In this document: positions 46,385-49,020 of the stretch, piece by piece | How positions within the stretch are numbered: the first letter of the stretch is position 1 | How the letters are laid out: each line of letters starts with the position of its first letter | Assembly: GCF_032191835.1 (NCBI RefSeq) | Contig: NC_083223.1 | Coordinates: forward strand, 83,018,001 to 83,082,000 | Reading direction: 5' to 3' | DNA from: Heteronotia binoei | Lineage: Eukaryota | DNA: 64,000 nucleotides | Position numbers and translations under genes: made by a program | Notes under the pieces: generated by a model | What the model saw: only the letters and a program-made list of their open reading frames with translations | Told to the model about the DNA's origin: nothing | The model's database searches: none

Positions 46385-46488
46385 TTTTGCGATCACCTTG
46401 TGCAAACTGTATTTCAATTTGCCGGCCACATACCCACTTTCTATTGAGGTTATACAGAGCATCTTCTGCATCACGAACATCTTCAAAC
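46385..46488 (-). CDS. SRSF12: SRSF12 exon 3 (RRM)
   Basis: 104 nt; (Q)[34 protein letters not shown]|gtaagt. Confidence 0.95.
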
Positions 46489-49020
46489 ATGACTGTCTGT
46501 TAAGGACGCTTTAAACATGCACAAAGCAAAAAATTGTATCATACAACATAGACCAAGACTTATTTTTTTAATAAATCAAGTGCTCTTTTGATATACTACT
46601 TAAAACTGAAGCTTACAGCTTACATTTTATGTGACCAACTAAATAGACCGGGGTCTCACCAGCACTCATTGCAATAAATATGTATAAGCATGAAAGACTG
46701 ACACCAGAGATGCAGGGACAAAAGTTTTCATTTCTAAAGAAGTATTATTTCATAAAATTAATGACAATGAACAGGTGCCATTCCCAAAACAATATCAAGT
46801 AAGGCTGGCAGTTTCAAAGTTGTAATTACTGGTTTTCAGGTGATTAGCCTTAGGAAAGAGTACTTATTTGGAATAAAAACACAAATACATGTAATAATCT
46901 AATTTTTAAAAAGATAAATTCTCCCTCACCTTATTATATGTGCAAGCCAAATCAAAACCAAAGCTAAAATTCTCATTTATCCATTTCTTCTGATATGATT
47001 GCAGATTGTCAGTGAAGACAATGGAAAATGTCAGTGAAACTGAGATGTTTCAGTGACCTTCATGGAATAAATTTTAATAGATAAGTGGGCAACCACACTG
47101 ATAGCATTTGAGTGTGTTAAAGATTGTGTGTCAAAAGCTTTCAGTACTTTAATTTTTTTTCTTTAAACCATGTAAAGGAAGTACATTTTACATGGTCTTT
47201 AAATTTATTCCAATAAAAATGTCTTCCACATAAAGATATAAACTTGTTTGCATATAACATTTAAACCACAACTGACCTCCTCCAATGAGATTGTTGGGAT
47301 AGAAATATAACATTTACGTGAAATGCTGTTTAAATATTGTTTACTAAAACAAGTCAAAATAAAAACATGATAAGTCAGATCACTATTTAGGACATAAAAA
47401 AAAATTAATTCAAATTTTCCCAGAAAACCCACATAACTGAAAGGTACACACCCCCAGACATCTGACAAGGAGCTAAGACTGGTGCCAACATCCATTATGT
47501 GGCTGGAAACAGGGTCAGTTCCACAGAACAGCAAGCTCATTTGCCAGGACACAGACCCACAGAAGGGCCCAAGACCACCTCAAGAAGGACAAAGTGTGAA
47601 ATAATTTTGTTTGGAAACCTCCTCTTTCAAGTTAAGGGGATCCACTGAGGCTGCTTTGCTTTAAGTCCCCAAAACCTATGGAATCAGTACTGTTTAGAAG
47701 TGGGTATCCCTCTTTAAACTTCTTGTGTGTACTACTTTAAGCACAAAAAATGGAGGAAAATGCCCTGCCCCTTTAACAGAAGCATAATATGTGAAAATGG
47801 GGAACTAAAGGTTTTCATGGCATGGATGTAAATAACATCCCTTGGTAAATAACATCACATGCAGTCCCTATTAAAGTGACAGGACACTTTTTCTGCAGGA
47901 AGCCGGAAACTCTGTCAATAGAACAGACAATTGTGCTGACAGTGGAATATTATTTACAAACAAGGTTACATTTAATGTCTTTAAAATATAATTATCCTAA
48001 TCCAGAAGCTCATATGTGCACTGAAATGCACACATGCCTCCTGTGCATCATACAGACTTCCCCACCCATTTCAATACAAGTGCTTTTCTATGTGTGCACA
48101 TGGAGTCACTCCCTCCACAATACGAATGGCAAAGTCATAATGATAAAAAACTGCATATGATTTGGAAGACCCTACATAAGGACATTTAAGATATACATCT
48201 TGTTTTAAGGGCCTTTAACTAAACTTGATGCATTATTTTAATAGGAAGATACCTAGATGCAAAAATAATTTAGATCAGTACTTCTGTTCTATGGCAAACA
48301 CTGTGACATTTATGCACAAAATATCTGGTTTTCTTATTTCCTTTTTCTTTCCAGTATTTAAAACAAATCGCTGTAAAGGCCACAAAAATTGCAGTAGATC
48401 ATCTAAATGACTGATACATTTCAGTATTCCATTAAAAATTATTCTTTTTCACAGAAAACCAAACAAATATCCATATCGTTTTCTTGTACTATTTTAAGGA
48501 AGCAATATTTTAAAATAAACATTATAAACAAGCAAGTGTTTGACTGAATTTTAAGCGCTTGAGTGATAAGATACAAAAGGAAACTTTGGCAGTTACCTCC
48601 ATGTCACGTGATCTTGACCTTTACTCTTTAGGGCTTGCTAGATGGACTTGACAAGGGCCGTAGAGCCAACCAAATCAGACTTGGCTTTGACTTTGGAACT
48701 CTGAGCAAATGTCGGAAAGCCGAAGCCTTAACTTGGTGTTGCGGCTTTGTCTTTTCCTTGAAAAAGGACTTCCCCTCTTCCAGTTTTCTTTTTATCTGTT
48801 TCCACCCTCCCTCTTTATTCCTTGAAGCTTGAACTTTAAAGGTGTCTTTTGGCTTGCCTGCTTGAACTCTATCTAACCAGGTTCATTCAAACTTTGGGGT
48901 GCTTGCCAGCCACTGTGGACTGCTTTACAATTTCTGAGACAAAGAAATAAATACATTAAGTTAGGACGCAGTAACAACAATTCACCTCAATTTTCAAAAA
49001 CACAGTGAAATAAAGGATAT
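46489..49020 (-). other. SRSF12: U12-type (minor spliceosome) intron 2 of SRSF12
   Basis: 5' site ATATCCTTT at 49020-49012; branch site TCCTTAAC at 46506-46499; reading frame requires the 3' end to be ...CAT|G. Confidence 0.9.
48597..48933 (-). other. SRSF12: Candidate poison (PTC) exon inside SRSF12 intron 2
   Basis: CTAAC branch, pyrimidine tract, tctcag| acceptor, GAG|gtaact donor; stops in all three frames within 60 nt; GA-rich interior. Confidence 0.7.

Follow-up and report, generated by a model that had tools for sequence, protein, structure and literature searches.

The 64,000-nucleotide stretch of Heteronotia binoei DNA analysed here (the window) carries on its minus strand a five-exon gene, found through a six-frame motif scan and direct reading of the sequence, which by its sequence signatures is SRSF12 and has a predicted protein length of 256 residues. 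The coding part of exon 1 (53274–53338), located by the motif scan and with its ends set by the reading frame, comprises 21 residues and the first two bases of an Arg codon, followed by GT. Exon 2 (49021–49125, 105 nt) encodes the first half of the RRM and ends with the CA of a split Gln codon, and exon 3 (46385–46488, 104 nt) encodes the second half: its first base, G, completes the Gln codon, after which come 34 residues and a last base A. The RS-rich exon 4 (46064–46205, 142 nt) is followed by the coding part of exon 5 (45112–45466), which contributes an RS-rich tail of 117 codons and the stop. The Pfam profile RRM_1 matches exon 2 over profile positions 13–44 (E 5e-7) and exon 3 over profile positions 46–69, which leaves room for one residue at the exon junction, the split Gln, and none for a Val-Met insertion. 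RRM_1 matches in exons 2 and 3 followed by two RS-rich exons constitute the layout of the SRSF10/12 subfamily. An SRSF12-type signature that includes YNLNRKWV is common to the window, to a bat locus (L015) and to a mammal-like locus (L001), and the signature of the window is unlike the SRSF10-like PNQMK..SRYDD of L003–L008; the assignment of such signatures to SRSF12 as opposed to SRSF10 follows in part the sequences of the human proteins.

Anatomy of intron 2

The intron that separates the two halves of the RRM (46489–49020, minus strand, 2532 nt, phase 2) reads, both from its own sequence and from the comparison of homologous loci, as a U12-type intron with AT-AT termini. Exon 2 ends in ...GCTTATATACA at position 49021 and the intron opens with the U12-type 5' splice site ATATCCTTT (49012–49020; first intron base 49020), giving the junction CA/ATATCCTTT, where the slash marks the exon boundary: this is an exact match to the U12 donor consensus /[AG]TATCCTT. 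Near the 3' end lies the U12 branch site TCCTTAAC (46499–46506), which agrees with TCCTTRAY and is preceded by a U-rich stretch. Taking A46500 as the branch adenosine, the distance to the last intron base is 11 nt, within the range of about 10–15 nt that is looked for in such introns. Downstream of TCCTTAAC follows the spacer AGACAGTCAT, so that the intron ends in ...GTCAT/G with G46488 as the first base of exon 3. The terminal AT (46489–46490; A46490, T46489) is the predicted productive 3' splice site, a prediction that draws on the reading frame, the continuity of the RRM, the conservation of CAT/ at this position and the listing of the human intron as AT-AT. The first-pass annotation had proposed both that the SRSF12 minor intron ends in AT and that a canonical RRM, with its exon of 104 nt, needs cleavage after this AT, 11 nt from the branch adenosine. 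The string and its coordinates were reproduced on the minus strand, exon 3 spans 46488–46385 and the spacing runs from A46500 to T46489, and we infer from frame, RRM and conservation that AT-AT is the correct description.

The individual motifs do not carry this assignment. Within the 64 kb of the window ATATCCTTT occurs 3 times (1.09 expected) and TCCTTAAC-N8-AT occurs once (0.17 expected), and hence the donor and branch motifs by themselves are within chance for a stretch of this length. What is beyond chance is that they lie exactly at the two RRM exon boundaries and that they recur in every homologous locus that was fetched. The choice of register also deserves comment, as the protein frame by itself also permits the junction CAA/TTT, which would correspond to a TA...TG intron. 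It is the U12 donor rule alone, with cleavage before ATATCC, that fixes the register as CA/G: the two registers lead to different mRNAs in the window, with the Gln codon read as CAG in the one and as CAA in the other. Under the U12 donor rule the productive 3' end of intron 2 is predicted to be AT, making this an AT-AT U12 intron, and this is the junction that we would expect to be used in Heteronotia binoei.

Homologous loci and the conserved intron end

The ends of intron 2 were compared with those of homologous loci found by word searching, with the exons searched singly rather than as a joined model. Searching with the genomic ORF that covers exon 3 yielded 28 short ORFs in other assemblies, in which the residue before FEDV reports the intron end (Met for AT/G, Thr for AC/G). 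DNA was fetched around several of these matches, as well as around two matches to the exon 2 ORF (L013 and L015); having been found via exon 2, these two involve no selection for the 3' end. Such selection does affect the list of exon 3 matches: gene callers favour ORFs that start at the ATG of AT/G, AT ends are therefore over-represented, and the share of AT among the homologues is unreadable from that list. The set of ten AT-type loci consists of the window, two loci from related species (L013, 86–94% identical to the window, and L014, 82% identical), the mammal-like SRSF12 locus L001, a locus of the bat Pipistrellus nathusii (L015:14010-15297), four fish SRSF10-like loci (L003:7124-8003, L005:7015-8003, L006:2264-3114 and L008:5267-6113) and the distant homologue L009. 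The fish loci are described as SRSF10-like on account of their exon 4, which bears the signature PNQMK.KERHSPRS.SRYDD.

In all ten AT-type loci CTTAAC is separated from the exon by a spacer of exactly 10 nt whose last three bases are CAT, as seen both on tabulation and in the alignment, and the distance from the branch adenosine to the intron end is consequently 11 nt in each of them; the remaining seven spacer positions are variable. Every contig that reaches far enough to include the 5' splice site displays the donor, as CA/ATATCCTTT in L003, L005, L006, L008, L013 and L015 and as GA/ATATCCTTT in L009. In two relatives, L011 and L012, the corresponding intron end reads CAC/ and lies 12 nt from the branch adenosine: the presence of AC at the homologous place indicates that this position is the real acceptor. 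As L011 is itself an SRSF10-like locus ending in AC, and the four fish SRSF10-like loci end in AT, the terminal base appears to switch between T and C among paralogues and lineages.

The same comparison afforded several observations on sequence divergence and on gene models. Between the window and L013, exon 2 together with the first ~520 nt of intron 2 is 93.8% identical (window 49200–48498) whereas identity falls to 85.7% from the intron end through exon 3 and intron 3 to exon 4 (window 46548–46046), as would suit a conserved regulatory element located in the 5' portion of intron 2. For L003, L004 and L014 the called ORFs disagree with the stored protein under the standard code, one of the proteins (P0002) ending in ...KSKWI where the DNA reads TGA; it seems that the gene caller used a code in which TGA specifies an amino acid. 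A word search with the RS tail of exon 5 gave a single match, P0001, a mammal-like exon 5 ORF on a 1.3-kb contig that is uninformative on the intron. Amongst the proteins, P0015 and P0016 are SRSF10-type sequences from many ENA contigs and P0061 is the SRSF10 of Varanus. A set of odd models (P0067, P0076, P0077 and P0081) comprises the Tetraodon and Tupaia models and SRSF10 copies: the gene model from Tetraodon has ...IQYIFEDV..., seemingly made to fit around the AT-AT junction, the Tupaia model named SRSF12 contains a frameshift after exon 2, and P0076 and P0077 have the appearance of processed SRSF10 copies with frameshifts.

Upstream AC and AG dinucleotides

Two further dinucleotides lie between the branch adenosine and the terminal AT of the window. 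An AC (46495–46496, minus strand) is situated 5 nt from the branch adenosine and, if used, would move the exon start to 46494 and insert Val-Met in frame. An AG (46493–46494, minus strand) is situated 7 nt from the branch adenosine and would move the exon start to 46492, adding 4 nt and leading into a stop (CAT CAT GTT TGA). These consequences, already put forward in the first-pass annotation, could be read out exactly as described there. Across the loci compared, upstream AC and AG dinucleotides are found 3–8 nt from the branch adenosine, with their placement shifting between lineages. The optimal distance from branch to 3' end in U12 introns is quoted as 11–13 nt; both dinucleotides fall below this and hence would be poor U12 acceptors. 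The competition among 3' sites that the first-pass annotation suggested finds no support in their placement.

An AG at +7 or +8 from the branch adenosine occurs in 9 of the 10 AT-type loci, and it may either act as a U2 acceptor in the splicing of non-productive isoforms or reflect no more than a preference for CAG. Use of the AG at 46494–46493 as a U2-type acceptor, for example from the GT donor at 48985, would coexist with the U12 acceptor at AT rather than compete with it within the U12 reaction. Several features are compatible with such a role, beginning with the U-rich stretch 5' of the branch site and the recurrence of the AG itself. Furthermore, 36 nt downstream of the minor donor, after an in-frame TGA, the sequence predicts a U2-like donor, GAG/GTGAAT (48980–48989, minus strand; GT 48985–48984), an arrangement of stop and second donor that, read from the sequence, is the dual-donor layout known from exon 2 of SRSF10. 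In human cells mutant for ZRSR2, moreover, the SRSF12 intron has been flagged for alternative-acceptor and core-exon events (de Wolf et al. 2021, PMC8280824). Against this stands the absence of the AG from L001, as well as the offset between the AG and the AT end, which is 3 or 4 nt depending on lineage within the ten loci: whether the reading frame would be kept is accordingly not conserved. We therefore regard a U2 role for the AG as a tentative possibility, and one that would leave the AT end of the U12 intron in place.

Use of the AC at 46496–46495 as the main U12 acceptor would instead produce a canonical AT-AC intron and a protein with Val-Met before FEDV. It is true that a 5' A is joined by preference to AC, that the insertion stays in frame and that the AC is common to the two closest relatives, L013 and L014. 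The position of the AC at only 5 nt from the branch adenosine is nevertheless far from the 11–13 nt optimum, and the insertion would disrupt the RNP1 octamer, RGFAYIQF, together with the continuity of the RRM_1 profile. Within the AT-type set the AC is missing or shifted at the offset seen in the window in L001, L006 and L015, and it is likewise missing from the human string. The recovered homologous proteins were also inspected for a Val-Met insertion before FEDV and none contains one; P0069, an assembled mammal-type SRSF12 ORF with a mammalian-like, possibly human N-terminus, joins exons 1–3 as ...GFAYVQ/FEDV... before entering intron 3. Cleavage after the AC as the main reaction is hence highly improbable. 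That T46489 is an assembly or sequencing error that conceals a true AT-AC intron is scarcely credible, for it has the rarity of AT-AT introns and nothing else in its favour and is opposed by the 18-nt intron end TCCTTAACAGACAGTCAT, which is identical in the window and in the independent assemblies of L013 and L014, and by CAT/ in seven further loci.

Human SRSF12, SRSF10 and the A-type introns

Cleavage after the terminal AT also agrees with what has been catalogued for the human gene. Intron 2 of human SRSF12 (chr6:89105531-89107153, NM_080743) is listed as a U12 AT-AT intron in Datasets EV of de Wolf et al. 2021 (PMC8280824), with GTCCTTAAC as branch point sequence and a 3' end given as ...AGCTAGTCAT/ and also as ...TCCTTAACAGCTAGTCAT/, and the minor-intron database MIDB (Olthof et al. 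2019, PMC6717393) includes human SRSF12 as a minor intron with the donor TCAATATCCTTT and the branch site GTGTCCTTAACA; SRSF12 is absent from the supplement of Moyer 2020 and from Parada 2014. The intron in the window is identical to its human counterpart in position, phase, donor (CA/ATATCCTTTATTT) and branch site (TCCTTAAC), and both have a 10-nt spacer ending in AGTCAT. It differs in length (2532 nt here, 1623 nt in human) and in three bases, of which two are spacer positions (AGACAGTCAT in the window, against AGCTAGTCAT for human and bat) and one is the first base of exon 3, which is G here and A in human and bat (Gln encoded by CAG versus CAA). This last difference has a consequence for annotation: with an exon 3 that starts with A, the donor ATAT and the acceptor ...CAT/AT allow a 2-nt shift in register that again yields AT-AT termini, an ambiguity that is absent here. 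It probably explains why the dataset of de Wolf et al. 2021 holds a duplicate human entry that is shifted by 2 nt and labelled as U2.

Introns of this kind form a recognised group, the A-type class of U12 introns (Sheth et al. 2006, PMC1557818; Larue and Roy 2023, PMC10639083; de Wolf et al. 2021, PMC8280824). Six AT-AT U12 introns were reported in human and six in mouse (Sheth et al. 2006, PMC1557818), and AT-AT is the second commonest non-canonical type of minor intron in animals. Other AT-AT or AT-AN introns, such as those of KCMF1, HNRNPLL, ERCC5 and IK, likewise combine a U12 donor and branch site with a last base other than C, and the intron described here exhibits no categorical difference from them. 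The first-pass annotation, which had presented a rare AT-AT intron, was right about the termini, but the intron is less rare and less novel than it was made to seem, since AT-AT is a recognised subclass and the human SRSF12 intron has already been tabulated as such: the intron described here is conserved, its human orthologue is on record as AT-AT, and it is therefore already known.

The paralogue SRSF10 offers the closest parallel. As the same annotation states, it possesses an AT-AC minor intron, which interrupts the RRM at the corresponding position: de Wolf et al. 2021 (PMC8280824) list SRSF10 as AT-AC, and Meinke et al. 2020 (PMC7244321) describe this intron as autoregulated, with a nested non-coding exon and a U2 donor that competes from further downstream. 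SRSF10 and SRSF12 share the position of the intron, an identical donor, ATATCCTTT, and a U2-like donor downstream of it, which in SRSF12 is a predicted one. They differ in that tetrapod SRSF10 ends in AC and SRSF12 in AT, and in that autoregulation has been demonstrated for SRSF10 only.

Taken together, intron 2 is very probably a conserved U12-dependent A-type intron with AT-AT termini whose 3' site is set mainly by distance from the branch rather than by the last base. The U11/U12 di-snRNP would recognise the donor /ATATCCTTT and the branch site TCCTTAAC, and the 3' cleavage site would then be picked according to how far it lies from the branch adenosine (11 nt in this intron). An A at the 5' end is compatible with every nucleotide at the 3' end, C being favoured, and an intron that starts with A would thus tolerate a T at its end, such that the AT at +11 would be used and the AC at +5 and the AG at +7 would not. 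Cleavage after T46489 would join CA to G and yield ...GFAYI-Q-FEDV..., with RNP1 intact. In this old intron the terminal 3' base toggles between T and C among paralogues whilst the spacing from branch to end hardly changes (11 nt in the AT-type loci, 12 nt in the two AC-type loci), which fits such a distance-based choice of the U12 3' site.

With regard to regulation, AT-AC, AT-AA, AT-AG and AT-AT introns have been pooled as A-type introns that are dependent on CENATAC (de Wolf et al. 2021, PMC8280824), and the suggestion of the first-pass annotation that the AT end would make SRSF12 especially sensitive to minor-spliceosome activity draws only on such class-level literature on AT-AN introns. 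For the human SRSF12 intron itself, the same source gives an increase in retention in ZRSR2-mutant cells from a PSI of 0.19 to 0.63 (p 0.0024, padj 0.115, at very low read counts). It is conceivable, albeit doubtful, that the terminal T and the fixed 11-nt spacing, which tetrapod SRSF12 shares with several fish SRSF10-like genes and the distant homologue, are held by selection as a tuning device rather than by drift, such that basal splicing would be less efficient, or would depend differently on ZRSR2 or CENATAC, than with the AT-AC end of tetrapod SRSF10. If there were such selection on the T, SRSF12 and SRSF10 would read minor-spliceosome activity differently.

For annotation, the consequence is that gene finders that insist on GT-AG or AT-AC termini will misplace the SRSF12 junction, as the Tetraodon model illustrates. 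For the SR protein family, SRSF12 contradicts the statement of Meinke et al. 2020 (PMC7244321) that Srsf10 alone among the SR protein genes contains a minor intron; SRSF12 and SRSF10 should both be counted as SR-protein genes that the minor spliceosome controls.
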